Under the pieces are notes generated by a model, which saw only the letters and a program-made list of their open reading frames with translations, did no database searches and was not told the origin of the DNA. DNA of 52,376 nt from Octopus bimaculoides (Eukaryota), in assembly GCF_001194135.2 (NCBI RefSeq), contig NC_068989.1, forward strand, positions 17,646,229 to 17,698,604, read 5' to 3'. Positions within the stretch are counted from its first letter, which is position 1; each line of letters begins with the position of its first letter. A program made the position numbers and the translations under genes. This document shows, in pieces, positions 14,301-44,215 of the stretch.

Positions 14301-17300
14301 TTGTTTTAGAACTATGAAGAAAATTCATTAAAGGAATCTAAATTTGAAATATCGAATAAGCTTATCAAAATATTAAAGTTATATGCTTTTGGAATATAAG
14401 TTTTAAGTTAATTTCTTGATTAGAAAGAATGATACCAACAGGACACGGTAAATTTTCCGAACAGTACAAAAGACGCAAGTGAACTGAAAAGGCTGCAACT
14501 GGGAATTGAAGTAATATTTGGATTTTGATTCAACCGGATCTTAAATCATACGCCATCATGCAAATAGCATCAAATTATGAAACACATAAAAGTTATACTT
14601 ACCTTCGCAGTAATTCCCATTAAAACCAGATGGGCATTTGCAAGTGATTGGGTTGGCATTATAAAGGCATGTTCCTCCGTTACGACAAGGGTTTGTTAGG
14701 CAATTCACAGCTGGATTCTTTTGATCACAAAGCTTACCATACCATCCATTAATGCAAGAACAAGAGAAGTCATTCGTTCCGAATCTGCTACAGCGGCCGT
14801 TGTTAAAACAAGGGTTCGGAGTACAAGGATCACTTTGAAATTCGCATCTCTGTCCTGTCCAGCCTTGTCGACAAGCACAAACGTAGTTGTTTCCCATAGG
14901 AAAGCATTGTCCACCATTTAAACAGGGGTTTGTTGTACAAGTCCTTACCAAACTCTCACAATTTTTTCCAGTCCATCCATAGGTACATGTACAGGTGTAA
15001 TTATATGTATCTTGTACATAACATTGTCCATTATTCAAACATGGTTTTGAAGCACAAGGATTCCTAATCCCACAGTCTCGACCCCCAAATTCTGGAGTAC
15101 AGTCGCATATTCTTGTGTTTAAGTTACAAGTTCCACCATTTTGACATCTTGGAGAGCACCGATTTGAAAACTGGCATTTATCTCCGAAAAAGCCATTTAG
15201 ACATATGCAAGTAATTTGATTGTTTACCATCTGACAACGTCCACTATTATGACAGACATTTGGATTAGACGCGCAAGCATCTCTAATTGAACAATCTGTC
15301 CCTAGAAAACCTTGAGGGCAGTTGCATCTTCGTGTGGTTACGTCACAAATTCCTCCATTTTGACATGGTGAATAGCATTCGGTCGTGTTCTCGCACCTAT
15401 CTCCGTAATATCCACTGAGGCATAAGCAAGTGATTTGATTGTTTACAAGCTGACAAGTTCCACCATGTTGACAGATATTTGGTGTGCAAAATGGTTGTTC
15501 ACATCGTTGTCCTGTGAATCCAACAGGGCAAAGACAAGTGAATTGAACTCCATTTGGATAGCATGTACCACCATTTTGACAGGGTGAGGTTTGACAGGAA
15601 TTAATGAGAATTTGACATTGTGTACCAGTAAATCCAGTTAGGCATTCACATTTCGCAACAAAGTTAGTTGTAGCACATCGGCCACCATTTAGGCAAGTCA
15701 CTGAGCGACATTTATCTTCAAATTGACAACGATTACCGTAAAAGTTAGGAAGACATTGGCACATAAATGAGGTTCCCGCATTCGAACATTTACCACCGTT
15801 CATACAAGGTGCTGACAGACATGCTGAAAGAACTAGTTTCAAAAGCAAAAAATAGAAAAAGAATAAATTAGCAGGTGATCAAATAAAATTGTTAGGAAAT
15901 AAAACTCTTTTATGAGAGTTATTAAAATACCATTACAAAAAGACTTAATTTTGTAAATGAGTTACAAGTGAACGTGATTTTTTTTCATCTTGAATGAATA
16001 AAAAATTTAAAGTTAAGTTAGCATAGTTATGCCTTAATATCATTTTTACTGAGTGGTATATCAGAAGCCAAAGTAAAACTGTCAATGTAAAACTCATAAC
16101 ATCTCATGTGAAACTACTAACTGAACTTACATTTCATCAATAAGACGTTAAAAACATATTAAGTTCAAATATGTTTGATATAACGTCAATTGGTAATATA
16201 AATAGAGCTGTATTAATATTATAGTTATATAATTAAGGCGGCGAGCTGACAATCGTTACTGCGTCGAGCAAACGAGGAAAATGATGAGCAGTATTTCTTC
16301 TGTTTTTACTTCTGAGTTCAAATTCCACCAAGGTCGACTTACTCCTTCATCCATTTGAGGTCGATAAGACACACTATTTGAACACTGGGGTTGATGTAAT
16401 CGACTTAACCCCTCCCCCGAAATTGCTGGCCATATGTCAAAACTTGAAAGCAATTTTATAGCTGTACTAAAATTAGAGTTGTTATAATTCTATTAATACT
16501 GTAGAAAAGAAGTTGTATTGATATTAGGTTCAAAATTTGGCACACGGCCAGCAATCTTAGAGGAGGTAGTAAGTCGAATGCATCGATTCCAGTGCTCAGC
16601 TGGTATATATTTTATCGATCCCGAAAGGTTGAAGGGCAAATTCGACCTCGGGGGAATTTGAACTCAGAACGTAAAAAAGGATGAAATACTGCTTAGCATT
16701 TTGCCCGGTGTGCTAAGGAGCCTGCCATCTCGCTGCCTTACAATCGGCTATAATATTAATACCATTTAAGGCGGCGAGCTGAAGTATCGTTAGCATGCGG
16801 TCAAAATATCTAGCAGTATTTCGTTCGTTTTCACCTTCTCAGTTCAAGTTCCGCCGGGTTCGACTTTGCCTTTCATCGTTTCAGGATCAATAAAATAAGT
16901 ACCATTTAAGCACTGGGGTCGATGTAATTGATTTATTCTCTCTCCTGAAATTGCTGATCTTGTGCCAAAATTTGAAACCTATATTATAGTCGATGACTGT
17001 CAACTAATTGTTTAAGAGTAGTCGTGTGACTATATTTCCTTAAGTTCTCGTTAAAGAGACAAAAATTAAGCAGACAAAAATTAAAACACTTTTGAACCTT
17101 TTTACCTAAAGTTGTTATATAAACTTTGTAAGTTGACAAGAAATGTTCTAAGTGAAAGCTTAGTTCTGAAAATTCTTATGAAATTCTATTGCTACATGAG
17201 CGTCTAATTTTCCTTTGAAAATCAGGTTACAGCGCTCGATTTTATTATAACCTGAAGGCAAACACGTCGAATTCGCCTTGAGTATGAGAACAGATGACAT

Positions 17301-20300
17301 GTATTGAATTAAATCTCACGTGCTTCTTAATCAAATGAAAAATCAACTGTTTTTTCTCTCTTAGAATTAGATAATGTAAAATTCAGAAACGACCGTCTCT
17401 TTAAATTACTGGAATCTAGTTATATTACGTCTTCCTAAAAAACAGAAAACTGTGTGTAAACAATATTGTTAAAACTCTCAGTTACCACTTTGACATCTGT
17501 TTCCGGTAAATCCAGGGACACATTTGCAAATGAAATCATTGACGCGATTCATACATGTACCTCCATTGTAACATGGCTGTGTTTCGAAAAAGCATGGTTG
17601 CATCTCTAGAAAAATAGACAAACATTTAGTGATGTTTCAAGACATAAAGTGTGTATTTCAAAATATATTAAATTTTTCGCTTTCCTTTATTTCAAATCGG
17701 TATCGCGTTATGAGGTTATCTCTTAATAGGATATAATTGTATTGGTTCAGTCCAAGAAGAAAGTGAAGCTATTTAGTTCCTACACCTTTTGTAACGGTGG
17801 TGGTGGTAAGAAGTCTGTTTCCCAACCACATGGGTCTGGATTCAGTTCTACTGCGTGGCATGTTGGGCAATAGTCTTCTACTATAGCCTTAGGCCCACCA
17901 AAGCCTTTGAGTGGATTTTGTAGAAACTGAGAAGAAACTGAAAGAAGCTCATCTTGTGTGTATGTGTGTGTGTGTGTTTGTTTGTGTGTGTGTGTGTGTT
18001 TGTGTCCGTTTGTGCCCGTTTGTCCCCCACCACCGGTTGACAACCGGTGTTAGTGTGTTTAAATTCCCATAACCTTGAGGTACGGCAAAATTGACCGATA
18101 GATAGTACCAGGCTTAAAAATAAAATAAGTATTTGTATCAATTAGTTCGACTAAAATTCCTTGAGGCGATGCCGCATGCCTAGAGGTAGATGGCTGCAGT
18201 TTAAAGACTGGAACAAATAAACTTTAAAAGATAAAAGATAAATGGTCACCCATAAAAAGACTAGATTCCAACACGAACGAAATACTCCTTCATTTTTACC
18301 GTACTACTACTAATTATAACTGACTGAGTTATCTAATTCTGTAGTAGTGACATACAATAATTCAGACTGAAGCAGTTACAGTGAAGCTTCATGACTATAA
18401 ATGAAGACATGGTGTCAGGTTACAAAATTCTGAGAACTTAAGAAATATCTTGATGCTCTATCGACACAATATCTTGTTGCTTTCAGAGAGAACGGGCCTC
18501 TAACCTTTTCTATTCTTCTTGTATTAACGGATAGAGTTAGAAGATATTAATACAGGTAGCGGATCTTTTCTGTTTGGCTGCATCTGATGAAATTTTAAAG
18601 TTTAACGAACATTTAAAAATTATGGTGTAGTGATGTAATTTTCCACGTTGAATCTCAGGAGCTAATTCACTTTTCCAGAAAAATTGTTTTAAAAGCGTTA
18701 CAGAGATTTAAAGTTTGATCATTTTTACCCAGTCAGACAACTGGGTTTAGAAGCTGCCAATTTTGCGTGTTGTCGGTTGTAATCAAATGAAATATTGGTG
18801 GAATTCTACTTTACGCATGCCATATAACCCCTCATATTTTTTTTTATTTTGGGGAATTTACACACAGGAATTCGTAGAATTATACACCCTGCCAAATATT
18901 AGTGCGTGATTTAAGGCCTATTTAGCTATCATTTTCAGTACATCTCACAGCCATCTCATATCTCATGTGTTTTGAGTATTCAATATGCGAAAAATGACCA
19001 CGTGGGTAGGCAGTTTGGCAACAGCTTAGCTTATTACTATGGAAACAAGTTCCTATATGTCTGTGGCTTTCGATCAACTAAAATTATCCGAAATTTGCAA
19101 AATTTAAAAGTTGTTAAATCTTTACTTATTAATTTATGGCGAAAATGAATTTCCTATCAATGACAACCATACAAAAATACACCAATATACCGAATATGAA
19201 ATCAATTTAAAAAAAAAATTAAGAAATTAAAAAGTGGCAGCCAAACAAAAATGATCCCCAGTAAGAGAAAGGGAAAGGATTGGAAACAGTATTTAAACCG
19301 AGAAGTCTAAGGGAGAGAGAGAGAGGAGGGAGGTGGGAGAGAGAGAAGGAGAGAGAGAGACCTGCATTAAATGTGCTCAAGTGGAGATTGCACAGGGCTA
19401 GAAATTTCAAAACAGAAGGAATATTTTTCTCTATTCAATGACTTGTTTGGCCTCTAACTAATGAGATGTTAATTTGATTCATTCTGTTTTCTTCTTCGCC
19501 TTTATAACCAGTCAGAGTAAGGTGGTCATTGAAAGATAGATAAAGACTAGAAAATTTAATATGTAAATATTGTTGTTAGGTGAGCAATTTTTATTGGATG
19601 CTATCAAGATATTTAAGAGAGTATTGTGTCAAACTAAGTATGGAAAGCCGATGCGGAAGTCAGAATTATTTTACGGTCTTGAAAATAAAACCAGTTTTTG
19701 GAATGAAGCATTGATTTGCGTGACTGTAAGTGCATTATTTTTAGAGAGTGAAGTTTTAAGCTGTGCGTTGTTTCACAGTATGGGGTTCTGGTTCTTAAGA
19801 AGTATAGTACGCTTCTTGTCACTATCGAAATGCTAACGACGTTTCAATTAATAAAAAGAATTACTAAGGTTGTAAATAAAGCTTTTGTGCGGAAGTCAAT
19901 CACAGTCTTCAGAGGTAAATATATGCTGTTTCAATTTTTATGTTTTTATTAAAGGTAACATTGTACCGACTGAATTATCACAAGGATTTTCGTCTTTATT
20001 TCCTCCTACCGAACGAAAATATTAGCTCATAAAATTTAATAAATAACTCACTTTTCTCACACTGTTGGCCTGTAAACCCGTGCATGCAGTTGCAGTTATA
20101 ACCATTAACTCTCGAAATGCATGTGCCTCCATTGTAGCACGGTTGTGCATCACAGTAATCTACACCTAGAGAAAATATAATATTATACAGTATTTAGAAG
20201 CTTTATTTTGTTTGCTTGATACCGAGAACTGAAAACCATAGCATGTGAAATGAACCATCGAAAATGTGCTTCCGTCTGTTGATTATTTTGCTTTCAGATT

Positions 20301-23300
20301 TTCTTTTCGCTTTCTGTGTTTGATTTTCCTAATAAACTTTTAAGTGGCGAGTTACCATACTGATTTGGTATTAATTTCATGTGAATATAGGTTATATTTC
20401 CTGATAGTAATTTGTCAATATCTCACTCAAATATTATCTTAAATTGAATATTTCTGCTATAACCGGGTTGGTAGTTTTCCTTTGATCTCTGACTTCTTCG
20501 GGCGTCTGACTTGTGTATTCCACATAAATGAAAACTCTTCATCCTTGCATTGATTCTGCTTTCTGTTCTTTTCTTTTCTGTAGCTGAAATAATGAAGTTC
20601 TGCTGTTCAGAACTTCCAGTTGAACCTTCCCCTACTCACATCAATACGTTATATACATTTTTATTTTCGTGTCTCACTCTGTTTCTCTTCGTTAAAGCCC
20701 CACTGAGCATAACATGTAGTTATTAAAAAGACCACGTTCCTATCCCTTAAATCTATATTATTAAGTCCACATTTAGCTCACTTCCTACTATCAAAATTCC
20801 ACATTAACAACACCATTCTTTATCCCATTCTTCAAAACTGAGATAACCGTGTAGGTCTAGCATTAGTCTTCCAACAAATGATTAAAAATGGTTAACATAT
20901 TTCTTAGAAATTTACTAAGAACAAATCAACTTGTATATTTCCAATTAAATCTTATTGAAAATTCTTGGAATATTCCATATTCCATTTTTACTAGCCGAGA
21001 ATCAATTTCTAACTTCATGTTTTACTAATATATAAAATAAAAGAATATATTATTAAGTTCACATCGCTTGGCGTAAAATCCCGCATTGTAACGACATTAG
21101 AAGTCCTTGGCGAGATTAGTGCATGAATCAGCATTTAGACATGTCTGGGTGCTACACATATTGTTGGCTTGTTCAAGACAAGTGGGTATATAGGGAGATT
21201 AGTTATCAATAAAACAAATGTAGCCAGTCACAGAAAGGCGGTGAGCTGGCAGAATCGTTAGCACGCCGGGAAAAATGCTTAGCGGCATTTCGTCCGTCCT
21301 TACGTTCTGAATTCCAATTCCGCCAGGATCGACTTTGCCTTTCAGCCCTTTCGAGGTCGAATACTGGAGTCGATTTAATTGACTTATCCCTCCATCGAAC
21401 TTACTGGCCTTGGACCAAAATTTGAAATCAATATAGTCTGTCACACATATTTTTATCACTAAAGCTGTTTTGTGAAACACTGGCGGGATAATACAGTTCT
21501 ATATTTAAGTGAAGAGGAATTATGTACATTATTTACATTTGACGGATATTTTTACTCATCTTGTTTGTTGTTAGCATAACTTTTCGGCTGATATACCCAC
21601 CAGCCTTCATCAGGTTCGAAATTTTCCCAAGACACCTGATGAAGGCTGGAGGATATATCAGCCGAAACGTTGTGTTAACAACAAACAAGATGAGGACAAA
21701 TATCCATCAAATGTAAATAATGTAAATAATTGGCGGGATATTTCAATAAGGAATGCAACAAGGAATCGGCAAGGATATGATATGTTACAAGGATATGATA
21801 AAATATATTTATTAAATAAATAATATATCTATATGAGAATATATTAAATAGTATATCATGTTAAGAAAATTAGAATGTATTACATCGAATTAAATGAAAT
21901 TACGTTAGTAAATTAACGAGTCGTAATAAAGCACCAACTAAGATTGGTTTTTACACTAAAATAAGATAGTTTCTGTAGACAAAAGAATTCAATGGATACC
22001 AATAATTTTTTTAACTAGACATATTTAGTGGCTGTCATTATTTCTCAATTTACCATGGAGCTTGATGACTAAATTGCTTGTAATACTTACATTTGATAAA
22101 ATGTTTGCAATACTTTATCATAATGATGTAAATTGAAATAGAAATACTTCATTCTTACCAATTTCACATCTGAATCCAGTGTAACCACTCGGACACATAC
22201 AGGAATAGTTACCAATACCGTCAACGCATGTACCACCATTTAAACAAGGAGTTGTCGTCAGACTGCATTCGTCGATGCCTAAGATAAATTAATATTAACC
22301 CATTCTTTCACTTCGTTAATCTTTGCTTTGAAAACTCATTCTAATTTGGAACAACACCAGAGCTATTACAATATCATGCATGTCTACATTGTTAGTTTTT
22401 AAGGGACTATTGTTAATATCTTGTTGAGTATATGAGCAGATAAATTCAACCTGCCTAACTAACATGTAGGTAACAACAAATTTTTCGACCGTTCGATCAT
22501 ATCTACTCCTAGTATTAGATGTTAACTTTTAACTAGAGTAATAGCTTTTAATTTTTCACTCACAATAAATTATTATTGTCCAGTCAAGGAAATGACCGAA
22601 ATACTCTGCAACCATTATTTGGAATATTTCTGAGGAGATAAGTAACACACTAGCAGGTGAAATATATGTAGAAGCAGATGGCTTGTTATATTAAATATAT
22701 AATGTACATAGAAGTGTAAATCTGAGCGTGCATATGTTAAAGATGTCCACGTTAAAAAGAGTTTATTCTATGAAATAGATTCAATTAGCAACATTGTTAT
22801 AGCTAAAATAAAATACATATTGATAATTTTGTGATTGTTAGGATTAAACAGTGTCACCAATTGTTTCAAATAAAGTTTACAAGTTAATAAGAAAAAAATA
22901 AATACCTTTATTACAATATTGTCCTGTGTATCCTGGGTTGCAGTAGCATCTAAACACAGAACCTTGCACACTACAAGTCGCACCATTTTTACAGGGTGAG
23001 CTACGACATACATCAGCTGAAAAAAATGTTGGAGATACATATCTTTTACACACATTTTTCTCTATCTATGTAAATAATGAAATTCGATAAAATGAAAGTG
23101 AATCAAATGCATTAATTACAGCAATGTATTTACAATCTCACAGAAAGAAAATTTGCTGATATTTGTTGATTTGTTTTAACAGAGATTTACATGCTTTATA
23201 TTGAATTGAGCTATCGCCAGTCGAGTCGACACCGTGTCAGTCTAGAGTTGAAAGTGTCAAAGCATCCTTTATTATCACGAGTGCTACATTGAGAATAATG

Positions 23301-25342
23301 ACAAAGATATTCAACTCTCATTCATTTGAATGCTTTGCTGTAAATATGTATTATGTGACGGTGTAGCTTTCTGCTGTTAGGAGGAAGGGCCCTGTAATAA
23401 TCCTTTCTACTATTGGCACAAGGCCTGAAAGCTTTTTGAGGAGGAGGGTTTAAGTCGATTACATCGACCACAGTGTATAACTGGTCCGTATTTAATCGAC
23501 ACCGAAAGGATAAAAGGCAAAGTCGACCTCGGTGGAATTTGAACTCAGAACGTAGCGACAGGCGAAATACCGCTAAGTCCAGCGTGTAGCCCTGTAATAA
23601 TAACGAATGACTACAGCTTAAAGAGACATTCTTTTCAAAAGAGCAAATCCCACATTAAGACAGTGTTGGCTATTCCGAAAGAAAATCGTATGAAAGGAGA
23701 GTTAAAACTTTTAGAAACAGTATAGTATGTATATGTCATTGAAAAAAACTTATCAAAATTATAGTATGTTTCAAAATTACGTTTCTGGCGGATATTCATT
23801 ATTCAAGGCGATATGTATTATAAGAGAGGATAATAAAGCATAAAATTCTGAGATACTAAGTGCTTTCCTCAAGGCACTAACGATTGAGGGAAGTGAATCA
23901 ACTTCACCAGAGAACAAAGAGTCGACCCAATATAGCGCTCCCCTTATTTTCTATTACAATCTCATACTTCTAACTCTTACAAATACTTATGTTCTATAAT
24001 ATTATATAAGAATTTACCACTGGAGTGGCACAAACAGTAGCGTATCTAATTAGATATTTTACCCTGGCTTCGTTCAAATTTCGCCGAAACCAATTTGTAT
24101 TGTTTTCTACTTTTTCCGAGATTGATAAACTAAAAATAGAAACGAAGCTCTGTGTACGCCTTAAATTACAATCGCTATCTGTGAATCATACTAAGTATAT
24201 ATTCATCTTTAAAGGGTATGAAACTGTAGAATTGTCTGAAATAAAGTCTCTTCATAGACTTGATGTGTTATTTGTGCTTCGACAAGCTTCCGCAATACCA
24301 GTGAATATTTCATTCCTGTTTCCGATATATATCTCAAGATACGCATTTCGTTTAAGCAGATGGCAATTAGATGCACGTTATTGACAAGCTAGTATTGAAT
24401 TGTAACATATTTTATCGAACTCAGGAATTTATAAGGTAAACTGATCGAGGCGAAATTAAAGTTCATGATGTAAAGAGACATAAATAATCTATAATTACCA
24501 TTGAGGTTACAGAACGGACCAGAGAAACCAGCCTTGCAGACTTTTTGACCGTTGTTATCACACATAAACCTGACTTGCTCAATGATGGGAATTTCACACT
24601 TCATCGCGCAATTAGGACCGTAATAGCCTTGGCTGCAGTAAGTCTGAAATAAAACAATTACACAAATATTCTAAGACTTTAGAAAATGGCACTTTAAAGA
24701 TTTATGCTATTTTGGTCGCAAATAGATCGTATTGAGGATAAACATGTTTATTGCACAATTTTTGCATCTCTAGAGGTGTGAGTGATATCTAATTCAAGAG
24801 AAGGTTGGACAGAAAAATAAATGCCAGCTAATTTCACTCAACCATTCTTCCAACTGCACGCCAACTGCTGCATGATACATGAAGATCAGAAATGGATGAC
24901 CAAAGATTTGATCAGTAATATTGGGTTTATCAATGTCTCCGAGCAGAGCCTAACAGTGTCCGCAACACAAGCAGCAATAAAAAGGTACATTAATACAAAT
25001 ATGAGTGATGATACTCGCAGATCAACAAAAGTAGGGCAAGAAATATCAAGATAATTTCAAGATAGTTCATAACTTTAAGACTTACTCGTATTTGATATGT
25101 CAGTTGACTACCAGTTCCATATTGACCAACCGTAGTTTGCATTTGATAACTGGCTTCTTCGATGCTCTTGTGGGGCATATTATATCCGCTGTTGTAATCA
25201 TATTTATCAATCAATTCTTGGTTGTCTTTTGCAGTAAAAGAAACAATAAATTTCTGAAAAACAGAGGTTAATGAGTATATATTCTACTAGATATAGATAC
25301 TATTGTAAAGAGTATAGATCACTAGAAATATAAGGTTATATA

Positions 25343-25497: not shown

Positions 25498-28241
25498 TCT
25501 CTACGTGTTTATATATATAGTGAGAATTTATTAAAAAAACAAAAGACGAAGACGGGTCTGTAAACAACAAACAGATGCATTAGTTTAACGCTCGGGAAGT
25601 GAGGAAGTCTTCTACGTTTCGAGCCTACGGTCTTCGACAGAAAGGAACACAGAAATAAACAGGGAGAGTAAATAGGAAAAGGTTTAGTGGCTAGCAATCT
25701 ATTATGGCGAATGCCGAACAGTGGGGGCACACAGGAGAGCTAGAAAGAAGTGGAGATAATATAATAGTGGTGATCCCAAAACGAAGGTGCTCGTGGGTGT
25801 GTATGTGAGAGCGTGTATGTGCGTGTGGAAAAGGGCTGGTAACCTTGACGTGTGAGTGTGTGCATGTGTAGGTGTGTGGATGATGGTGTGGGTGCTGGGA
25901 AGTGGTCAGTGCTAGTGTGTGCGGGGTGGTGTGATGTGGTGTATGGTGTAGTGGTGTTGGGGTGTGGAGGAAGCGAGATTGGGGGAAACAAGGGTGGGGG
26001 TCTAAGGGATGGGGTGGGGTGGGATGAGATGGTGGGGTTGGAATGTGTAGGGGTGAGGAACGAGGGAGAGGGTGACGATGAAGGGAGAGAGTGGGAGAGA
26101 GAAGGTGGGTAGGAGTGAAGAGAAGAAATAGGTGCCAGAGCAAGAGGGGAGAGGTGGGTGGGAGGAATTAGGTGTGAGAAGAAGAGAGGAGGAAGATAGT
26201 TAGATGAAGAGGGGAGGGGAGTTGAGCCCATGTAGAGCAAAAGAGCGAAGAGAGAAGATTAATCCCTGCTCTCGGCGAAGACAGGAGTCCAGACGGCCCC
26301 TGTGCAAAGACAATCCGGACATAGACAGGTGTTGTAAAGAGTGACCGGTAGAGCGAAAATGGCGCGAGACCGGGGTGTCGTTGCCGTGTTTGACGTATTG
26401 GATGTATCCGATGTTTAGAGAAGGACAGAGAGAGAGAGAGAGCAGTAGATGCGGTAGATGACGTTGTTAGAAGTGCGAAATTCTCGAAATACGGGAGTAG
26501 AAAAACAGGCAACAACTGATGAATGGTCGTTCTTTGTGTTGTTTGTCTTGTTTTCCATTTGTGTATTTCGTTGTTCGAAAAAATAGTTTATGTTCCTGTA
26601 CTCGTACTTCGTATTTTTTGTTGTTAATGTTTTGTGACGTCCTGTGCCCACACACGCATGTATATACACGTATAGATGTATGTACATATACGTATGTATA
26701 TATATGCATATGTATATATNNNNNNNNNNNNNNNNNNNNNNNNNNNNNNNNNNNNNNNNNNNNNNNNNNNNNNNNNNNNNNNNNNNNNNNNNNNNNNNNN
26801 NNNNNNNNNNNNNNNNNNNNNNNNNNNNNNNNNNNNNNNNNNNNNNNNNNNNNNNNNNNNNNNNNNNNNNNNNNNNNNNNNNNNNNNNNNNNNNNNNNNN
26901 NNNNNNNNNNNNNNNNNNNNNNNNNNNNNNNNNNNNNNNNNNNNNNNNNNNNNNNNNNNNNNNNNTATATAATTTTTTTCCTAATAAAAGGTTTTCCATT
27001 TCTCTTTCGTTTTGTATCTTTTTAGCTTCGACAGTAATCTTATTGTCTTTTTTAAATGAGGAATTTCATTTTGTTACTAACTGCAAAATCTTCTATTTTT
27101 TTTACCTTTTTGTTAGATAGCATTTAATGTTTTAAAAAAATTCAGCACCTCCAAAGATCTAAGCAGTAGTCTCTAAAATAAATTTCACTTGCCTTATTTT
27201 ACATTGTTTTATAACCTTAAATTGCTGTAGGTGAATTGTATATGTAGATAAATTGTTTTAGATGAATTGTTGTAGACAAATTCGCCGGATACCATTGAAA
27301 CAGTGGACCACCTAATCTCTGAGTCTGAAAGTCTTAATACCACCGGAGTATAAATCAAGACATGATAGAGTTGGCCAATAACTACATTGATTAATATTGT
27401 ATGTCAGCAGTATAAAATCAAAACTACGGAAATGTAATATAATCATCACCCTAGGATGTAACTGAGGGAGAAAATATAGATTCTTTGGGATTTTCCAGTA
27501 CATGCACTCCGAACCATCAATGCTAATAAATTAGATATTGCTGTGAAAGACCAAAACAATAATGTTTGTTTATTGATCAACATGAGTTTTCCTTGTGATC
27601 ATAATATCTCAGCAAAAGTCTTTGAGAAGCTCAGAAAATATAAAGATTTGCTCATTGAAATTTAACTGCCTTGAGATGTGGCATCTCAAGGCAGTTACAA
27701 AACCACTCATCGTAAGAGCACTAGCAATGATTTAAAAAAACGCAACTGAAAATGATTTCAGAATGATCCCTGGCTTCATCCAAGCAAGTAGTGCAAAAGA
27801 TTGTTTTAACAGGTACGTCTTAAAACGTACCGGGAAGAGCTTTGTCGATGTGAAAACGATTACTACTCACGTATTTTATCTTTTTTTTGTTTTTCGCAGA
27901 ACTTCATTTAATTTAGAAAATGAACAATTTGGTGTGTTTAGATTAATGGCCTATCAATGTATATAGTGAGTTTCTTTTCCCTAGGAGTCGGGAGGACACT
28001 CGGCAAGAAATGGAAAGAAAATGGAAAGAAGAAAATCTCAAAATAGTAATTCTTTCTACTTCAGGCACAAGGCCTGAAGTTTTAGTGGAAGGAGCTAGTC
28101 GATTACAACAATTTCAATGCTAAATTAAATCGACCTCGAACGGATGAAAGGCAAAATCAACCTCGACGGAATTTGAGCGGACAAAAGGCGACTGAGAATT
28201 TTGTCCGGTATACAAGCGATGCTGCTTGCTCACCGCTTAAA

Positions 28242-28296
<55 letters not shown>

Positions 28297-29223
28297 GCTG
28301 CTGCTGCTACTACTACTACTACTATTAATAATAATAATATTAATAATAATGACGAAAACAACAATAAAAACAATAACAACAACAGCAAAGAAGAAGAAGA
28401 AGAAGAAGAAGAAGAAGAAGAAGAAGAAGAAGAAGAAGAAGAAGAAGAAGAAGNNNNNNNNNNNNNNNNNNNNNNNNNNNNNNNNNNNNNNNNNNNNNNN
28501 NNNNNNNNNNNNNNNNNNNNNNNNNNNNNNNNNNNNNNNNNNNNNNNNNNNNNNNNNNNNNNNNNNNNNNNNNNNNNNNNNNNNNNNNNNNNNNNNNNNN
28601 NNNNNNNNNNNNNNNNNNNNNNNNNNNNNNNNNNNNNNNNNNNNNNNNNNNNNNNNNNNNNNNNNNNNNNNNNNNNNNNNNNNNNNNNNNNNNNNNNNNN
28701 NNNNNNNNNNNNNNNNNNNNNNNNNNNNNNNNNNNNNNNNNNNNNNNNNNNNNNNNNNNNNNNNNNNNNNNNNNNNNNNNNNNNNNNNNNNNNNNNNNNN
28801 NNNNNNNNNNNNNNNNNNNNNNNNNNNNNNNNNNNNNNNNNNNNNNNNNNNNNNNNNNNNNNNNNNNNNNNNNNNNNNNNNNNNNNNNNNNNNNNNNNNN
28901 NNNNNNNNNNNNNNNNNNNNNNNNNNNNNNNNNNNNNNNNNNNNNNNNNNNNNNNNNNNNNNNNNNNNNNNNNNNNNNNNNNNNNNNNNNNNNNNNNNNN
29001 NNNNNNNNNNNNNNNNNNNNNNNNNNNNNNNNNNNNNNNNNNNNNNNNNNNNNNNNNNNNNNNNNNNNNNNNNNNNNNNNNNNNNNNNNNNNNNNNNNNN
29101 NNNNNNNNNNNNNNNNNNNNNNNNNNNNNNNNNNNNNNNNNNNNNNNNNNNNNNNNNNNNNNNNNNNNNNNNNNNNNNNNNNNNNNNNNNNNNNNNNNNN
29201 NNNNNNNNNNNNNNNNNNNNNNN

Positions 29224-29257
<34 letters not shown>

Positions 29258-31534
29258 GCGCGCGCGCACACACACACATAAATGGAGAAGGATTATGATA
29301 TACTATTGTTATATCATGATAAACACTCCTCAGTGATATCGAACACTTACCTGAAATGGCTGAAGAACCACAAGTGTCATAGGGTTCCGTTGTGACCCAA
29401 CGTATGACGTATTTAAGTTTATGATGTTATCACCTGAAATTAATTTTTAAAAAATGAAATAAAAATTTATTGTATCAAAAGAGTGAAAAGCGATTCAATT
29501 AGGCTCGACATTTAAAATATTAAAATATATACTAAAGAAAGTATTTATAATGGATATGGACGAAGTGAATGCTATAAACGTTCAATGCCAAGGGACACTT
29601 TTGTTTAACGAAGTTGATTTTTACATTTCCAGTTTCTCTGCTTTTTAGGATGCTAAATTCGAAGAAAATGGTAGAATGTTGAAATATATTCTTTCTCCCT
29701 ATCTAATTTGTTTTCTGCACGTTCCTACTTAAAATCTCTGTGGTTCATAAAAAATAACAATAGTAAATTAACATAATGCTGGCAACACTATTTATTTAAA
29801 ACTTCACCGCTACTCTCGTCTTCAAAAAGCAGACGATATTCTGTCGTATCCTTTTCGGCGTTTGTGTTTTTCTTTCAAACCGTCTAACCGCCATTTCTAT
29901 ATTATTTATTCAGTCCTGTATAGTTTTTTTTTCTTTCAACTGTTATGTTAAAATAGCTCTATCTAACACCAATTGTATATTCTGATGCTCTTTTAACAAT
30001 CATTTTAGCATCTGTTCTTAAAGTCTCTCTCTTACGTTTCTATTTATTTTCATTTTTATTTTTGCACTTTTCGATCATCCAATGGCTATATTGATATGAT
30101 AGCGGGGAACCAGCTAAGTACTGGTCCATAGCCAAAACGATTAACTCATAACAGTCCGTGACTACGTAGTTCTGTGATTACACAGTAACATAATGTAACG
30201 GTTTCTCATATGGACACAATAGAAAACAGTCAATTGAATTGACTACTCTTCACGGCTGTCACTTTACTGCCGTGGGAGACTGAAAGGCAATCTCGGAAGG
30301 ATTTTAACTACACATAATATAATGCAAAATCATTATGGATTTGACGAGTCATACGCTGCTTTGCTGAGCAGTGTTCAAATTCTCTTGCGGATAAATCTTT
30401 ACCAGTGAATGGGATGAAAAGATTTAGCTTAACGTTACAAAAACCGGAGTTAAAGCATCAAACTTATACCTCCTAGTAATTTATGAAAGGATTAGAAAAT
30501 AAAATATTGACCTTGAGGCAAGGTAAATACACCAATACACTACTTAAGACTACAGTTAAGCTTCTACAGTGCTAGCTCTGCAAGCATCGAGTTTAAATTC
30601 TAACTCAAGTCATTTAATTTTTTTTTAAATGGCATCAAGAGAAACGAGACTGGGTTGCTGAGAAAGTTATGAGTATTTTAACATTCCATTTCATTTTTCC
30701 GCAAAAGTACAAGGAAATGGTACTGAACGGAATATTTTAAAATGTGACGAACAATACTGATGACGCCTCATAAAAATGTCGGTTAAATAGGCATAAAAGG
30801 ATTTTGCTATTAAATTGTACAAATAATGTATGCTGATTATATTAGTACACATATTTGGGTTAAATATTTATTATTACTGATTCAGTATCAAACTAATTTC
30901 ATGGTCTTGGTCAACTGCTAAACATTGTAATCATACAACTATATGGAAATATAACTTTTGTATGGAGCCAAAACTGATTAAAATCACAGCATATAACGCA
31001 CTGTCGTCAAAAACAAAACAAAAATACAATAGTTTGAAACACTTTAGTTTCAGCATAGTGCCGACAATTTGGAGCTTCTTTTCATGTTTCAGAATATTTA
31101 TCAAACAACTGAAATGATTTTCTAGTAAGCATTGTAATACAAAATCCCATTTATTAATGATGGTAAATAAGGTCTTTTGCAAGAGAGAGCTTAAAAACGA
31201 TCTATTAAAAATTATACTGATATGAACTGCATGCAAGTTCTTTCTTTCCTATGCTTGTTAAACAACTTGATTATTTTGGTGGGACCCTTCGAAAGAGATA
31301 GTTTCATAGAAAGTTTTAATAATGTGGAGAATCTAGAATGCGCTTGTTTAGTGTGAGTTCGCTCTTGCCGATGAGACATGATGTTGTAACTAGGACATGT
31401 GTGTATGCATGTATGTATGTATGTATGTATGTATGTATGTATGTATGCATGTACATATGTATGCACCCATGTATACATATACATACATGCGCGAAATTAA
31501 AAATATAAAATGGCGTCAATTTACCCTTCGCATC

Positions 31535-31581: not shown

Positions 31582-33069
31582 CAATTTACAAAAAACCAAA
31601 AGACGAAGACGGGTGTGTAAACAACAAACAGATGTATTAGTTTAACGCTCAGGAAGTGAGAAAGTCTTTTACGTTTCGAGCCTATGCTCTTCGACAGAAA
31701 GGAACACAGAAATAAACAAGGAGAGAAAATAGAAAAAGGTTTAATGGCNNNNNNNNNNNNNNNNNNNNNNNNNNNNNNNNNNNNNNNNNNNNNNNNNNNN
31801 NNNNNNNNNNNNNNNNNNNNNNNNNNNNNNNNNNNNNNNNNNNNNNNNNNNNNNNNNNNNNNNNNNNNNNNNNNNNNNNNNNNNNNNNNNNNNNNNNNNN
31901 NNNNNNNNNNNNNNNNNNNNNNNNNNNNNNNNNNNNNNNNNNNNNNNNNNNNNNNNNNNNNNNNNNNNNNNNNNNNNNNNNNNNNNNNNNNNNNNNNNNN
32001 NNNNNNNNNNNNNNNNNNNNCCCCATGTCTGGCAACAGGAGTCTGCGCCATGCCACACAAGCAGAAGGACCCAGTCATGGCTGTCAGACAATTTCTGCGG
32101 CTACATCACCACTAACATCTGACCACCTAACTCCCCAAACTGCAACCCCCTGATTATTATGTGTGAGGCGCAGTTGAGCGAGAGGCCAACAAAACTCCTT
32201 GTAACACCAAAGAGGAACTGAAGGCAAGGATTATGGCAGCATTCAGCAACTTAAACAAGGAGACCGTCCAGAAGAGTTGTAAGAGATTCCGAAGTCATCT
32301 GGAGGCTGTGGTTGAAGCCAATGGCGATTTTATTGAATAAATTTGCTCGTTAGTATTTCAAGATATTTTTGAAGTAGTTTTGGTAAATACATGTTAAAAT
32401 GAGATGTCAGTGTTATTTCCATAATCCTTGCCTGCAGTTCATCATGGATGTTACAAGGAGTTTTGTTGGTCTCTCGCTCAAATGCGGCCCACGCATAGTA
32501 ATCAAGGGGATTGTAGTTTGGGAATTTGTTGGCCAGATGTCAGTGGTGATGTGGTCGCAGAAATTGTCTGACAGCCATGACTGGGTTCCCCTGCTTGTCT
32601 GGCATGGTGCAAACTCCTGCTGTTAGACATAGGGTCTTTCAGCAGCCTCCCTCTTGACCCAGGCACTAGATGTAGGTCTCCGTGTGGAGACTGAGGCTGT
32701 GTGGGAAGATGAATGGAGGCATAACGTCGCCATCACTAGTGATCACTCCAAATACCAGGAGGACCCAGTCGTGACTGTCAGACAAGTTCTGCGACCACAT
32801 AACCCCTAACATCTGGCCACCTAATTCCCCAAACTGCATCCCCCTTGATTATTATGCGTGGGGCGCAGTTGAGCGAGAGACCAACAAAACTCCTTGTAAC
32901 ATCCATGATGAACTGAATACATATATAAAAATGAAAATGTTTTCTATCAATGAACCACTCAGTAGTATATTTTCTTCCCGGTTACTCTTATATGTACGTG
33001 TGTGTTCGTGTGTGTGTATATATATGTATGTATGCATGTGTGGGTGTGTGGGTGTATGTNNNNNNNNNN

Positions 33070-33119
<50 letters not shown>

Positions 33120-35132: not shown

Positions 35133-36800
35133 GTATGTATGTATATATATATACATATATGCGTATATAATGTTAAATGTCGAAATAATGTCTAAGCAAA
35201 TCGTTTGAATACTTCATTTACAATCATTTCATCATAATTTAATATAATGAGTCTTCCATAATGCTGTAATCATACCGGCAACTATTGATTAAACTTCATG
35301 CAGCATGTGGGATTTTTTCATAACACATGTTGATCATGACTCGTGGGAATTTCGTAAAAGGAAATTTTAGGATTCATGTTCAACATTATTAGGCAAGAAA
35401 TCCTACATGACACAGGAAAATTAATGATTGCAGCATTACGTAAGACCGGTTATTTTGAAATATGATGAAACAATTGTAATCAAAGCATCGAAAGGAGTTG
35501 ATAACTCCATGTCTACTACTACTGGTAGAACGAAGGAAGAACGTTTTGTGGGAGTTTTGCCCCATGCGTAAAATGGAATTGAATATAAATCAGAAAGCCA
35601 ATGCAGAAGATTTCTCTGAGCGAATGCTGTCCTAAGGGGTATTCAACGTGGACAAGCGGTGGTTGATGAAGCAAAATTATCGGCTGAAGTTAGATAGACA
35701 AGAGATTCCAGACAGAGAAGTGCGCGAAAGCATCTTTTGACCCTTACTGTGACGCTCATACTCTAGAAAATTGTGAGTCTTTTGTGATTAGAGACTTCTT
35801 TAATTAGGATGTCAGCGCACTTGTTCTCTTATAGAGAGGCCCAGGTCTTAAAAAGAACCTAAACTGCCTCTCAAAGAATTAATTATAACACAAAAATATT
35901 ACACTATTCTTATGGTAGTTTTGAACTTAAGACCAAGGATCATATTTACTAGTTTTTAAAAATTTTTTATGTATAACGATGTACTTACCGATAACTCCTG
36001 TTTCTCTCGTCCCATATTCACACGATACTGTGCTACTGTCAGGTCTGGCACAAACATTGAGACTTGTTTGACATTGTAAACTTCCGAAGTTTGAGCAATG
36101 ACGTCTGTTGGCCAGTAAACGATTGAAATTTTCAAACTTGATTAGCTTCACATCAATAACATAGTTTGCTACAATTGGCTGCAAAGGAACAATAAGAACC
36201 CTTTATTAGATATGTTTAGCACACTTAACATTGGTGCATTTTATTATTGATTGAAAATAAAATTTCTTTTAACTCTTTACGATCATTTTCATTGTATACA
36301 AAAGGGCATAATAGTTAGTCTGGAGTAATATTCATGCCAGATATATAAATACAAACTGTTTAATACTCATTAAATGTTAGATTTACCTTTCTTATGATGG
36401 CGTGTTAATGTTACAAAGGCGATTAATGATGGTGGATCATGTATTTTGTACTTCAATTAATTTATGGGAGAGATACTGTTTCGCATCCTTCTAGATTGAT
36501 AGCATAAGCACGGACACAACTACATTAGGTTTGACAACGTAATGGCAAGTTTATAGCAACAGTAAGTTTGGAAACACAAGTTTGATGGCATAACTGCAAT
36601 AATTATGACAATTAAGTTTGAGAACATAAAGTTCAGTATGTTTAATAGAATAACTACAAAAATGTTATATATTTATTTATTGTTATAACATAAACACAAT
36701 GTTTGATAACTTAACTACAGACGATATATATAGTTCCCTTTCAATATATGTGTCATGTTTCGATGTAAGAAATCAATACAAATAAAATTAATGCGATATG

Positions 36801-42800: not shown

Positions 42801-44215
42801 TATAAGTTATTGGGCTAAAGAATTGCGGTTTGTGATATTGTAAAATGTGATGGTTTCAAACACGGATTGAACCTAGTCCACTTCGTTCCGAGAGAAGTTA
42901 CCTTTTACTACAGTGCTTTCGCCTAAACATATCACAAATAAATTCTTTAAATATTAAATTGATTAATAATTCAGTATTAGATTTAGTTAGAATATCGAAT
43001 GAAAAATGCCAGTTGAATAATTTTGCACATGAGTCTATATTCAAGCTAGAGATTCTGTTCATTATTATTATTACTGTTGTTTATCCACATTGTACATAGT
43101 CGGTCAAACGGTGAGGTATGACTACATCTCCATCTACCTGAAGACAATGCTTCACATAATGTTCAGTCTCAAACTATCACAAACAATGTCATTAATTTCA
43201 TGCAGAAAATGATGTGCTATAGTCTATCATAGCAAACATTTAATCAATATACAAACGTCATTAATGAATACATGTACTCGTAAATTCAGATAGATTTACG
43301 CGTACATAAATAAACACAGATACACACACATACGTACGTACATACATACATGCGTACATACATACACACATACATACGTACATACATACATACATACATG
43401 CATACATACATACATACATACATACATTTTCATAGAATTACGTAATATCAATGCATATGTCGATAGTAACTGAAGTAGTTATACGAGTATGTATGTATAA
43501 TCAGCTATGATTATATACGTCTAGCCATTTTATTACTGTGGCGACAGATTTCTGTGGATTTTTTTGTGTGTGTATGTGTGTGTGCGCGCACGTAGTGTGT
43601 GTGCGCATGAATAAGAGAGAGAAAGAGTGCGCGTTTTTATGTCTTAAAACAAGCGACTTACAAACACACACGCATATAAATACTCCAATTAATACATTTA
43701 ATAATATATTCATATAATAATCACCCATGGCTAGTTTCTTATCATTACATAAACATAAACTGCTGATTGTATTCGCACAAAGTTTTATACACCTTGATGC
43801 GTTCCTGCACGTTTACAGGTGTAATATTTATTTATAAATGTACGCAAATAATTAAAGGTGTTTGATGGTCGTATATACATACATACATACATACATATAT
43901 GCCTAAATACATGATACATATATCTGTATATGTTTATGAATTTGCACTGTCACTGAAACGCAGCATAACATCTGTTTATATTGTAATAACGAGAGGTGAT
44001 GCAATCTATGTGCATGTATTTATGTATATGTGAGTCTGTATATATGTGTATATCCATAAGTGCATTTTTATGTAGATGAAATATGTATATGTGTTTACCC
44101 GTGTGTGCACGTACATATGTGTTCACATTTTAAGGAATGTAAGGCTTAGGAATAGAATACTTACAGAGATTGTAACAGCAACAAGGAGCAGAAGACTACT
44201 AGTTAACTGAAGCAT
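10643..44215 (-). CDS. 11-exon gene for a predicted secreted Delta/Serrate-like protein: SP-C2(MNNL)-DSL-EGFx15-ChtBD2, 832 aa
   Basis: Coding exons (minus): 44165-44215, 35989-36178, 29351-29433, 25086-25253, 24499-24643, 22906-23016, 22159-22278, 20052-20165, 17486-17605, 14603-15823, 10643-10818. All junctions are GT-AG, phases are 0,1,0,0,1,1,1,1,1,1, total length 2499 nt, one open frame ending in TAA. Confidence 0.88.
10958..11083. repeat. Near-perfect hairpin: 55-bp arms, 16-nt loop
   Basis: Arms 10958-11012 and 11029-11083 are reverse complements with one mismatch. Confidence 0.9.
11960..12060. mobile_element. Mariner-like terminal remnant
   Basis: ta-caagggggtgctgaaaagtttctgg resembles a mariner TIR start; no partner TIR found. 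Confidence 0.35.
14603..15823 (-). CDS. Coding exon 10: 11 tandem EGF repeats (EGF5-15)
   Basis: 1221 nt, phase 1-1, within the 430-aa ORF 14556..15848. ctttcag| acceptor and GAAG|gtaagt donor. Confidence 0.95.
16235..16979. mobile_element. Three SINE-C copies in +/-/+ arrangement
   Basis: 16235-16451(+), 16528-16740(-), 16768-16979(+), all with the aaggcggcgagctg head and gccaaaatttgaaacc-type tail. Confidence 0.85.
17486..17605 (-). CDS. Coding exon 9: EGF4 (K)[39 protein letters not shown]
   Basis: 120 nt, phase 1-1, tttctag|...|gtaact. Confidence 0.92.
20052..20165 (-). CDS. Coding exon 8: EGF3 (G)[37 protein letters not shown]
   Basis: 114 nt, phase 1-1, ctctag|...|gtgagt. Confidence 0.92.
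21054..21167 (-). pseudogene. Decayed EGF pseudo-exon in the intron between EGF2 and EGF3
   Basis: aacaag|(A)[36 protein letters not shown]. 114 nt, phase 1-1 geometry, in-frame TAA, Cys5 to Tyr, and AT instead of GT at the donor position. Confidence 0.8.
21235..21428 (+). mobile_element. SINE family C copy
   Basis: ggcggtgagctggcagaatcgttagcacgccggg...ccaaaatttgaaatc. Other copies at 23400-23587(-), 28060-28235(-), 40950-41165(-), 42165-42355(+). Confidence 0.85.
21491..21730. mobile_element. Palindromic Penelope-like insertion with 10-bp TSD and a hammerhead-like motif
   Basis: Direct repeat tggcgggata at 21481-21490 and 21731-21740; inverted arms about 21518-21614 and 21635-21731; CTGATGAAGGCTGG..TCAGCCGAAACGTT. 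Confidence 0.7.
22159..22278 (-). CDS. Coding exon 7: EGF2, calcium-binding type (G)[39 protein letters not shown]
   Basis: 120 nt, phase 1-1, IDEC...D....Y calcium-binding EGF consensus. Confidence 0.93.
22906..23016 (-). CDS. Coding exon 6: EGF1 (A)[36 protein letters not shown]
   Basis: 111 nt, phase 1-1, six-Cys EGF, GT-AG. Confidence 0.92.
24499..24643 (-). CDS. Coding exon 5: DSL domain [48 protein letters not shown]
   Basis: Six Cys spaced C-x8-C-x3-C-x11-C-x7-C-x8-C as in Jagged/Delta DSL, with YYG and CD.NG.K.C motifs. Confidence 0.93.
25086..25253 (-). CDS. Coding exon 4: C2/MNNL C-terminal part [10 protein letters not shown]...GSQLTYQIR
   Basis: 168 nt, phase 0-0, ttttcag|...|gtaagt. 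YQIR matches Jagged1 FEYQIR immediately before the DSL domain. Confidence 0.88.
25540..26418 (-). mobile_element. Penelope-like element 3' portion (GIY-YIG C-terminus plus terminal repeat)
   Basis: Minus frame 26418-26200: ..[31 protein letters not shown]...[19 protein letters not shown].., matching the PLE pattern pvarHF..gHs...E..lI..l....GlN, followed by a low-complexity 3' region and terminal repeat. Confidence 0.8.
27330..27835 (+). mobile_element. R4/NeSL-type non-LTR retrotransposon, restriction-like endonuclease remnant
   Basis: [24 protein letters not shown]...[37 protein letters not shown]...LIVRAL. Confidence 0.82.
28242..28453. repeat. Compound trinucleotide microsatellite (ACT)n-(GCT)-(AAT)n-(AAC)-(GAA)n
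   Basis: Directly visible; adjoins a long N gap. Confidence 0.95.
29351..29433 (-). CDS. Coding exon 3: C2/MNNL middle (G)[27 protein letters not shown]
   Basis: tttcag| acceptor, |gtaagt donor, 83 nt, phase 1 to 0, bridging the flanking exons exactly. NP motif corresponds to Delta NPIRFPF. Confidence 0.82.
31597..31748 (-). mobile_element. Penelope-like terminal repeat copy
   Basis: Close match to 25540-25690; runs into an N gap. Confidence 0.65.
32021..32915. mobile_element. Rearranged DD37D (maT-type) Tc1/mariner transposase remnants
   Basis: [12 protein letters not shown]...[15 protein letters not shown]-type segment with 37 residues between the second and third catalytic positions, carrying stops and a frameshift. 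Three overlapping-homology copies: +32021-32340, -32400-32750, +32755-32915. Confidence 0.8.
33792..34559. mobile_element. About 770-bp imperfect foldback element
   Basis: Arm pairs include gtagtgaggaaagg/cctttcctcactac and tttctaggatatcccagctattgg/ccaatagctgggatatcctagaaa; symmetry continues inward to about 34147/34174. Confidence 0.8.
35229..35468. mobile_element. Degenerate palindromic MITE-like element
   Basis: tcatcata..taatgctgtaatcat / atgattgcagcattac..tatgatga plus inner arm similarity. Confidence 0.5.
35989..36178 (-). CDS. Coding exon 2: N-terminal part of Notch-ligand C2/MNNL domain
   Basis: ttgcag|[63 protein letters not shown]|gtaagt. Resembles Delta FELKL..F.N..GLL.N..CC...C.T.F.VC...C.YG...T.V.G. 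Confidence 0.88.
37560..37700 (-). mobile_element. Penelope-like terminal repeat copy with hammerhead-like fold
   Basis: Minus strand TCTTT-CTGTTGAA-GAGC-GTA-GCTC-GAAACGTC-AAAGA. Confidence 0.6.
37946..38150 (+). mobile_element. SINE family A 3' half
   Basis: Matches the tail of the 3049 and 40214 copies. Confidence 0.75.
39959..40968. repeat. Degenerate ~43-bp minisatellite inside a ~250-bp tandem duplication
   Basis: Repeating gacatctgt..tatttgatctagcatt units. Duplicated blocks are 40089-40720 (SINE-interrupted) and 40721-40968. Confidence 0.8.
40214..40592 (-). mobile_element. SINE family A, full length, 13-bp TSD
   Basis: atctcaaacggca at 40205-40217 and 40594-40606. Confidence 0.9.
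44165..44215 (-). CDS. Coding exon 1: signal peptide [17 protein letters not shown]
   Basis: ATG at 44215, hydrophobic core, and a phase-0 donor TCT|gtaagt that matches the phase-0 acceptor of the C2 exon. Predicted cleavage near PIVA^NY. Confidence 0.8.

Follow-up and report, generated by a model that had tools for sequence, protein, structure and literature searches.

The 52,376-nucleotide stretch of the Octopus bimaculoides genome analysed here (the window; NC_068989.1, positions 17,646,229 to 17,698,604) carries an 11-exon gene on its minus strand, from an ATG at 44215 to a TAA at 10643, with a single DSL domain encoded by the fifth exon. By homology this gene descends from a Delta/Jagged-type Notch-ligand gene, and it has probably been rebuilt into one for a secreted, chitin-anchored matrix protein outside the canonical Notch ligands. 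The order of features in the product is a signal peptide, a C2/MNNL domain, the DSL domain, 15 six-cysteine EGF repeats and a CBM14 chitin-binding domain followed by the stop codon, with no cytoplasmic tail. The DSL segment is letter-identical to Obi_XP_014781344.1 in the supplementary alignment of PMC8166818 (Sci Rep 2021), a paper that used the gene only for a supplementary tree built from 138 DSL sequences. From this comparison, which covered the DSL segment only, the gene can be identified as O. bimaculoides XP_014781344.1, already a RefSeq prediction.

The minus-strand interval 24499–24643 is exactly one exon, flanked by a polypyrimidine-AG acceptor (ttatttcag) and a GT donor (gtaattat), and its translation is 48 amino acids long. 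Against the Pfam DSL family (PF01414, cut-off 24.2 bits) this exon alone scores 43.3 bits (E 4.6e-11, profile positions 1–44 of 46) and the full protein 35.3 bits; the runner-up family on the exon is teneurin EGF, at 18.6 bits. The DSL assignment is far above chance level. Teneurin-, laminin- or stabilin-type EGF identities for the domain were rejected, since the Pfam ranking and hhalign speak against them. The six cysteines have the canonical spacing C-x8-C-x3-C-x11-C-x7-C-x8-C, and the domain aligns without gaps to human JAG1, DLL1 and DLL4 in a phmmer search of the PDB. The original prediction, which had viewed this one exon, had proposed that the disulfide spacing was intact and that the motifs YYG, CD.NG.K.C and G..G..C were kept; both points hold, the latter from the translation and the JAG1 alignment, with G..G..C present as GFSGPFC.

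The loop between the second and fourth cysteines is replaced. In the phmmer alignment it lies opposite C-NKF-C-RPRDDFFGHYA-C of JAG1, and the substitutions from JAG1 to the window protein are F199>K, R201>E, R203>P, D204>I, D205>I, F206>E, F207>Q, G208>V, H209>R and Y210>F; of these, H209>R and Y210>F are conservative in type. In hJAG1 the residues F199, R201, R203, D205 and F207 form one conserved face of the DSL domain, and their mutation abolishes both trans-activation and cis-inhibition (PMC3415683). These positions are K179, E181, P183, I185 and Q187 in the window protein, and the GH that follows is also replaced. All five face residues have therefore been exchanged, as had been predicted for the Notch-binding face.

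For the DSL sequences of the published lophotrochozoan file (part 2), the five face positions were scored in domains with canonical spacing only and with conservative replacements allowed. Every designated Delta1, Delta2 and Jagged of this set scores 5 of 5 (O. bimaculoides, O. sinensis, labelled 'Ovu', Pinctada, Lottia, Mizuhopecten, Lingula and Elysia), including the Delta1, Delta2 and Jagged of O. bimaculoides itself. All members of the window family score 0 of 5, even with conservative classes allowed. The family also has [VT]-R-F where nearly all DSL sequences of canonical spacing have G-H-[YFWN]. A score of 0–2 of 5 is, however, also seen in several other non-canonical DSL proteins, and a degenerate face is not unique to the window family; divergent loops as such are not rare. 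That loops of this kind might be common in bona fide lophotrochozoan ligands had been raised as one possible refutation; none was found there, while they are present in the wider, uncharacterised DSL expansion. The loop alone is therefore less special than first held, because many non-canonical lophotrochozoan and cnidarian DSL proteins have divergent loops.

The replacement sequence is itself conserved within the family. Five family sequences, which are 63–86% identical, all carry P183, E186, Q187, R189 and F190 in the loop, and each has K or R at position 179. This gives a family loop motif of K/R-C-x-x-P-x-x-E-Q-x-R-F, with an invariant core of P-x2-E-Q-x-R-F. Three of the five former Notch-face positions are thus fixed in a new chemical state. 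Conservation in the loop is equal to that of the rest of the DSL domain, and not higher (5 of 11 positions invariant, as against 13 of 31).

The DOS motif was tested with its published regular expression (Komatsu 2008, PMC2504490), which has no match in the window protein or in any family member and which matches the controls JAG1, DLL1, cricket Delta, hake Delta and O. bimaculoides Delta1. With the Pfam models for the atypical repeats (cut-off 27 bits), EGF1 scores 13.9 bits for EGF_DL_JAG and 12.8 bits for JAG1-like_EGF2, and EGF2 scores 13.8 bits for JAG1-like_EGF2; cricket Delta reaches 64 and 42 bits for the two models. The plain Pfam EGF model gives 29 bits for EGF1 and 42 bits for EGF2. 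That both are ordinary EGFs, and not a DOS-type pair, had been claimed and is confirmed by these scores. EGF1 bears consensus sites for O-glucose (C-R-S-S-P-C) and O-fucose (C-KNGA-T-C). Over the whole array, residues 216–773, the O-fucose consensus (C2-x4-S/T-C3) is found in 8 of 15 EGFs and the O-glucose consensus (C1-x-S-x-P/A-C2) in 3 of 15. This resemblance of the array to that of a Notch receptor explains the automatic name 'notch homolog 1-like'.

The gene model was built from the cysteine-rich minus-strand frames and then completed with proteins from an exhaustive library search. Exon 2 was first located by tblastn with DLL1 and JAG1 sequences, used as a lead only, and database proteins later confirmed it; a regular expression search for MNNL motifs upstream of the DSL exon had found none. 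All introns are GT-AG with consistent phases, exon 3, with phase 1 to 0, joins exon 2 to exon 4 in frame, and the open frame of 832 codons has no interruption. Exon 1 has 92% nucleotide identity to the O. vulgaris locus described below. At the other end of the gene, an AATAAA (10642–10647) overlaps the stop codon of exon 11.

The domain encoded by exon 11 scores 57.2 bits against Pfam CBM_14 (PF01607) when scanned in isolation, covering all profile positions (1–53 of 53). It shows the six-cysteine ChtBD2 module with conserved aromatic residues, a pattern common to the CBM14/peritrophin-A proteins, and its PDB matches are a chitinase chitin-binding domain (E 4e-12), tachycitin (7e-8) and Der p 23 (1e-7). 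The squid chitin-binding beak protein 3 is a weak match (E 0.055). The possibility that this exon belongs to a separate downstream gene was rejected on the fit of its phase-1 acceptor to the phase-1 donor of exon 10, the continuous frame and the identical ends of RefSeq paralogues. A Kyte-Doolittle scan of the full protein found no hydrophobic segment apart from the N-terminal 17 residues, and no transmembrane segment. The protein is predicted to be secreted and to have no cytoplasmic tail, because the signal peptide is its sole hydrophobic segment and the CBM14 exon ends in a stop. While the DSL reading of the exon stood, this wider context of the gene, including the chitin-binding end, the absent transmembrane segment, the diverged C2 domain and the gene family, had been missed by the one-exon view.

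Descent from a Notch ligand is indicated by the N-terminal half of the head as well as by the DSL domain. When the N-terminal 250 residues of the family were compared by hhalign with canonical Deltas (O. bimaculoides Delta1, cricket, hake and bryozoan), the probability was 99.5% and E 4e-23, over 179 columns spanning both C2 and DSL. The canonical octopus ligands were taken from the supplement of PMC8166818; a homologue search with Delta1 had returned cricket and hake Delta only. Pfam MNNL scores 32.1 bits in the O. sinensis paralogue P0121, and an AlphaFold2 model of this paralogue, used for fold assignment only and with no residue-level structural claim, has DLL1, DLL4, JAG1, JAG2, Serrate and Delta C2-DSL-EGF crystal structures as its top Foldseek matches (E 1e-13 to 1e-22). 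The C2/MNNL of the window protein is homologous to the ligand C2, but strongly diverged, and its N-terminal part has 4 cysteines where canonical ligands have 6. With the canonical ligands (Delta/DLL1/DLL4 and Serrate/Jagged, among them O. bimaculoides Delta1 XP_014769856.1 and Jagged XP_014779348.1) the window protein shares the N-terminal C2/MNNL, a DSL domain of identical cysteine spacing and an EGF array. It differs from them in having no transmembrane or cytoplasmic region, none of the five face residues, no GH, no DOS-type EGF1–2 and a CBM14 at the C-terminus.

Relatives were sought by exhaustive search with the 48-residue exon and by profile search, which gave close ones in three species, O. 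vulgaris, O. sinensis and O. bimaculoides, and in no other. Octopus-specific therefore means found nowhere else in the searched libraries, among which squid, cuttlefish and nautilus genomes were not included. When a spliced fragment was used as query in a word-indexed search for homologues, the matches were all anonymous EGF fragments, with no orthologue among them. Three O. sinensis RefSeq proteins, P0015, P0120 and P0121, named 'jagged-1b-like' or 'delta-like 1', have the order signal peptide-C2-DSL-EGFn-CBM14 with 5–7 EGFs, and end at the same residue as the window protein, at the end of CBM14. In O. vulgaris, locus L001 (OX597822.1:59805888-59860866) contains all 11 exons in the same order at 89–97% nucleotide identity, with identical splice sites for those checked (exons 2–9 and 11), and the rebuilt orthologue is an uninterrupted open reading frame (ORF) of 907 amino acids with the same CBM14 ending. 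A further DSL-containing gene begins about 7 kb downstream in this locus. A second O. bimaculoides copy, L002 (CM046609.1:17550382-17585751), has another DSL fragment 1 kb past its CBM14 exon. The family is thus multi-copy, and tandem in at least these two genomes, with paralogues that are about 63–66% identical.

The number of EGFs is labile across the copies, at 5, 7, 15 and 17. Exon 10 of the O. vulgaris orthologue (L001 36741–38180) has an in-frame insertion of 219 nt, a tandem duplication of two EGFs, giving 17 EGFs to the 15 of the window gene. Several public models of the family differ from the gene structures found here. In O. vulgaris, CAI9727905 skips the exons for EGF2–4 and ends before CBM14, CAI9727904 has the CBM14 exon translated in a wrong frame, and CAI9727911 is a fusion in which the end of one copy runs on into the start of its neighbour. 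The O. bimaculoides model XP_052826287 (184 aa) is without exon 4 and ends after DSL, though EGF and CBM14 exons lie downstream. Within intron 6 of the window gene, 22771–22839 on the minus strand translates to 23 residues that are 78% identical to the C-terminal 23 residues of P0014, a truncated O. bimaculoides paralogue model; this is probably shared intronic or repeat sequence that was mistaken by the annotation pipeline for a terminal exon. The relic of an EGF exon in intron 7 has a copy in O. vulgaris (L001 31388–31629, 92.6% identical) with a stop at the same codon and a 1-nt insertion. Since the stop is shared by both species, this exon died before O. bimaculoides and O. vulgaris split.

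Comparison with the O. vulgaris orthologue shows an intact gene. Across about 239 substitutions there is no stop or frameshift, and the two indels are both in frame. All 106 of 106 cysteines are identical, with 143 of the 726 other residues changed (P = 1e-9), and one 13-residue stretch is identical between the species. Exons are 89–97% identical, against about 84% for the introns that can be aligned. The ratio of non-synonymous to synonymous substitution rates (dN/dS) for the whole gene is 0.66 at dS 0.14, below 1 (P = 0.007) and high for a signalling ligand. Between the window gene and its paralogue L002 (dS 0.7–1.0), dN/dS is 0.21 for the DSL exon (P = 1e-4), 0.26 for the first C2 exon (exon 2) and 0.17 for CBM14 (all P < 3e-4). 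The altered DSL domain is under constraint, given the paralogue value for the DSL exon. For the same domains dN/dS is much higher between orthologues than between paralogues; relaxation in recent time, slightly deleterious changes that are segregating, or a dS under-estimated in the close pair may lie behind this gap.

These figures bear on the reading of the gene as a decaying duplicate or an annotation artefact, in which the odd loop would be drift. It would be consistent with the high orthologue dN/dS, both over the whole gene and in the DSL exon, with the dead EGF exon in intron 7 and with the cut-off or mis-framed public models of several family members. A 2.5-kb ORF that has stayed intact in two species through so many substitutions, with in-frame indels, conserved splice sites where checked and every cysteine kept, argues the other way, as do the low paralogue dN/dS and the higher identity of exons than introns. 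A pseudogene is scarcely tenable on this evidence, and was rejected on the intact ORF, the conserved cysteines and dN/dS. The proposal that the DSL scaffold has been kept and probably repurposed is supported at the level of sequence, by the loss of every face residue, the invariant new loop and the paralogue dN/dS, while the four features of the whole gene that the exon could not reveal were no part of it.

In the probable case of a chitin-anchored matrix protein, the CBM14 tail would hold the secreted product on chitin, in a cuticle, a chitinous lining or a chitin-rich mucus. The EGF array would serve as a stiff, rod-like spacer with a length that varies between copies. At the far end the C2-DSL head may use its remodelled face, which is still under constraint, to bind a non-Notch partner. 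In canonical Notch activation the ligand has to be anchored in a membrane, so that its endocytosis can pull on the receptor; since the anchor needed for this pull is gone, the window protein could not be a canonical activator. It is probable from its predicted features that the protein no longer acts as an ordinary Notch ligand. Ligand immobilised on a plate activates Notch in laboratory practice, and a matrix-tethered ligand would be the natural counterpart, with a C2-DSL head fixed to chitin, the anchor taking the place of endocytosis as the mechanical resistance and the face co-evolved with the octopus Notch. This is considered very improbable. If it were true, a Notch signal would reach cells that move or grow against a chitinous cuticle.

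Alternatively, the protein could be a secreted modulator of Notch, binding the receptor through C2, the EGFs or a co-evolved DSL face and acting as a soluble or matrix-bound decoy antagonist, as engineered secreted Delta/Serrate do, or as a chitin-immobilised agonist. The retention of the full C2-DSL-EGF head architecture and the purifying selection on this head, seen against L002, are compatible with such a role. There are also precedents: Delta and Serrate, when secreted, are reported to antagonise Notch in Drosophila (Sun and Artavanis-Tsakonas 1997, as cited in PMC8166818), 'Delta2' genes without a transmembrane segment exist in molluscs (PMC8166818), and C. elegans uses DOS-less DSL ligands, of which DSL-1 is described as secreted (PMC2504490, PMC3415683). 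Yet the window protein has none of the five residues whose mutation abolishes both trans-activation and cis-inhibition; among the replacements are a mid-strand proline and, in R201>E, a reversed charge. The DOS-type EGF pair is missing too. The mollusc Delta2 genes keep a canonical DSL and thus offer no precedent for its loop. A modulator of Notch is on this balance unlikely.

A special case of the chitin-anchored protein, with a specific type of partner, would be a molecule for immune-type or surface recognition that sits in a chitinous barrier, similar to the VCBPs. It would be secreted, present in many copies and fast in its evolution, with a recognition head that varies and a tail that binds chitin. 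The multi-copy nature of the family (in tandem in both O. vulgaris and O. bimaculoides), the different EGF numbers of the copies and a high orthologue dN/dS with a frozen scaffold would all suit this role, and a C-terminal CBM14 tail is also found in the VCBPs of protochordates as these are described in PMC2632668. It is an argument from analogy alone, and the head domains are under ordinary purifying selection between paralogues (dN/dS about 0.2), not diversifying selection. This special case is judged quite unlikely.

Several points weigh against the chitin-anchored matrix protein that is preferred here. The C2 domain is a second Notch contact in vertebrate ligands. Between orthologues the DSL exon has 8 non-synonymous and 2 synonymous changes, a dN/dS of 0.94 that with so few changes is indistinguishable from neutrality; enough statistical power comes with the deeper comparison to the paralogue L002. 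Pfam MNNL has no match on the window protein's own N-terminus, and CBM_14 is not listed for the protein in whole-protein Pfam scans, so that this assignment rests on the scan of the isolated domain. The model of P0121 is of mediocre quality (predicted local distance difference test score 60, and about 30 for CBM14). Secretion, chitin anchoring and a non-Notch partner are all deduced from domains. A missing membrane anchor alone does not exclude Notch activity, given that a ligand of C. elegans, DSL-1, is described as secreted (PMC3415683).

Among known systems, the mollusc Delta2 is similar in that it too is a Delta-family duplicate described as lacking a transmembrane segment, and it is present in octopus (PMC8166818). 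Two O. bimaculoides Delta genes are given there, XP_014769856.1 and XP_014771450.1, and the second is taken to be Delta2. XP_014771450.1 has the canonical loop CRVRDDELGHYYC, a short DOS-like EGF1–2 and no CBM14, and the window gene differs on each of these. That the window gene is itself Delta2 was ruled out, since accession and sequence are different and XP_014771450.1 has CDHFCRVRDDELGHYYC where the window loop is replaced.

The DSL domain of DLL3 is degenerate, and DLL3 acts by cis-inhibition inside the cell, a mode that needs membrane anchoring. It is DOS-less like the window protein, but is itself transmembrane and has no chitin-binding domain, whereas the window protein has no anchor. 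Unlike the window protein, the C. elegans DSL proteins are genetically proven Notch ligands with separate DOS co-ligands, and none is known to carry a CBM14. LAG-2, APX-1 and DSL-1 of C. elegans share the DOS-less state, and DSL-1 is described as secreted, with one EGF (PMC2504490, PMC3415683). DLL3 is a DSL-family member without the DOS motif that is reported to inhibit rather than activate Notch (PMC2504490); DLL4 and the C. elegans ligands are likewise without the DOS-type pair, though accepted as ligands.

An expansion of DSL sequences in lophotrochozoans has already been noted (PMC8166818). Non-canonical proteins with DSL repeats, such as Obi_XP_014785705.1, bivalve multi-DSL proteins and the Nematostella 'delta-like D', have degenerate faces (0–2 of 5) as in the window family. 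Those with canonical spacing mostly keep GHY before the fourth cysteine, where the window family has [VT]-R-F, and the latter has a single DSL behind C2 and a CBM14. Many cnidarian proteins (Nematostella 'delta-like D', Desmophyllum 'jagged-2') have 4–10 tandem DSL-like domains, as do many unnamed proteins from metagenome assemblies, and GHY is kept in most. DSL repeats are used far beyond Notch ligands.

The features of the window are collected in Table 1. The window as a whole is AT-rich DNA, rich in microsatellites and in masked or N runs. Fifteen N runs, either gaps or masked repeats, are present, including 3314–3404, 5316–5540, 26720–26965, 28454–29223, 31749–32020, 34575–35090, 39174–39516, 45527–45706 and 46387–46912, most of them flanked by microsatellites of the (TGTATG)n, (CA)n and (TA)n types, and none overlaps an exon of the model. 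Three sets of ORFs look like transposon debris. For the ORF at 620–1057 on the plus strand, a weak match to endonuclease/exonuclease/phosphatase, at 21.5 bits and below the cut-off, suggests the 5' fragment of a long interspersed nuclear element. Inverted ORF copies on both strands at 32100–33130 resemble the C-terminus of a mariner-type transposase and have no Pfam match. An ORF at 48500–49200 with a FADD motif, also without a Pfam match, may be a reverse-transcriptase remnant.

Table 1. Coordinates of the gene and its associated features in the window.
Feature	Position	Strand	Basis
TATATAAG box, putative core promoter, ~50 nt upstream of start codon	44265..44272	minus	sequence reading
Exon 1: ATG and 17-residue signal peptide, gtaagt donor	44165..44215	minus	best BLOSUM match to O. 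vulgaris P0012 N-terminus
Exon 2: first part of divergent C2/MNNL, ends GVIG	35989..36178	minus	tblastn lead, splice sites, hhalign
Exon 3: C2 middle	29351..29433	minus	tblastn with O. vulgaris P0012, splice sites
Exon 4: C2 end, GSQLTYQIR	25086..25253	minus	aligned to JAG1 C2 C-terminus FEYQIRVTC
Exon 5: DSL domain	24499..24643	minus	Pfam, phmmer, identity to Obi_XP_014781344.1
Replaced loop, C176-AMK-C180 to residue 192	24560..24610	minus	alignment to JAG1, family comparison, face scoring
Exon 6: EGF1, ordinary hEGF, not DOS-type	22906..23016	minus	Pfam, splice sites
Exon 7: EGF2, ordinary, also EGF_CA-like, not DOS-type	22159..22278	minus	Pfam, splice sites
Dead EGF exon relic, not coding sequence: in-frame stop, one cysteine to tyrosine	21050..21165, intron 7	minus	translation, O. 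vulgaris comparison
Exon 8: EGF3	20052..20165	minus	91% nt identity in O. vulgaris
Exon 9: EGF4	17486..17605	minus	splice sites, O. vulgaris comparison
Exon 10: EGF5–EGF15, eleven repeats in one 1.2-kb exon	14603..15823	minus	Pfam EGF 185 bits, 11 stretches
Exon 11: CBM14/peritrophin-A chitin-binding domain, then TAA	10643..10818	minus	Pfam, PDB matches

That the gene is annotated and its DSL segment published in a supplement is already known, as are Delta2 genes without a transmembrane segment, DOS-less ligands and divergent DSL domains. A literature search found, among the papers it covered, none that combines a DSL domain with a chitin-binding domain, nothing on six accession numbers or on octopus 'jagged-1b', and nothing relevant on octopus peritrophin or sucker. 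Not found described are a C2-DSL head with a C-terminal chitin-binding domain, a complete and conserved replacement of the Notch face, and a distinct multi-copy family in Octopus.

The gene seems to be a clear case of a core signalling ligand that has been dismantled and reused, with its head kept under selection and a chitin-binding module added. The features that define canonical Notch signalling are gone: the face that binds the receptor, the pair of DOS-type EGFs, the anchor in the membrane and the endocytic tail. If the head binds a new partner, the DSL fold would serve as a scaffold for binding in general and would not be confined to Notch, and the family would provide a natural negative control for the ligand face in the structural biology of Notch. 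The automatic names 'jagged-1b-like', 'delta-like protein 1' and 'notch homolog 1-like' are misleading and will inflate the counts of octopus Notch ligands. For the cephalopods, the finding adds a lineage-restricted, multi-copy family of predicted secreted proteins that is probably located in a chitinous structure, for which the sucker lining, the beak or radula, the gut cuticle and the stylets are candidates.

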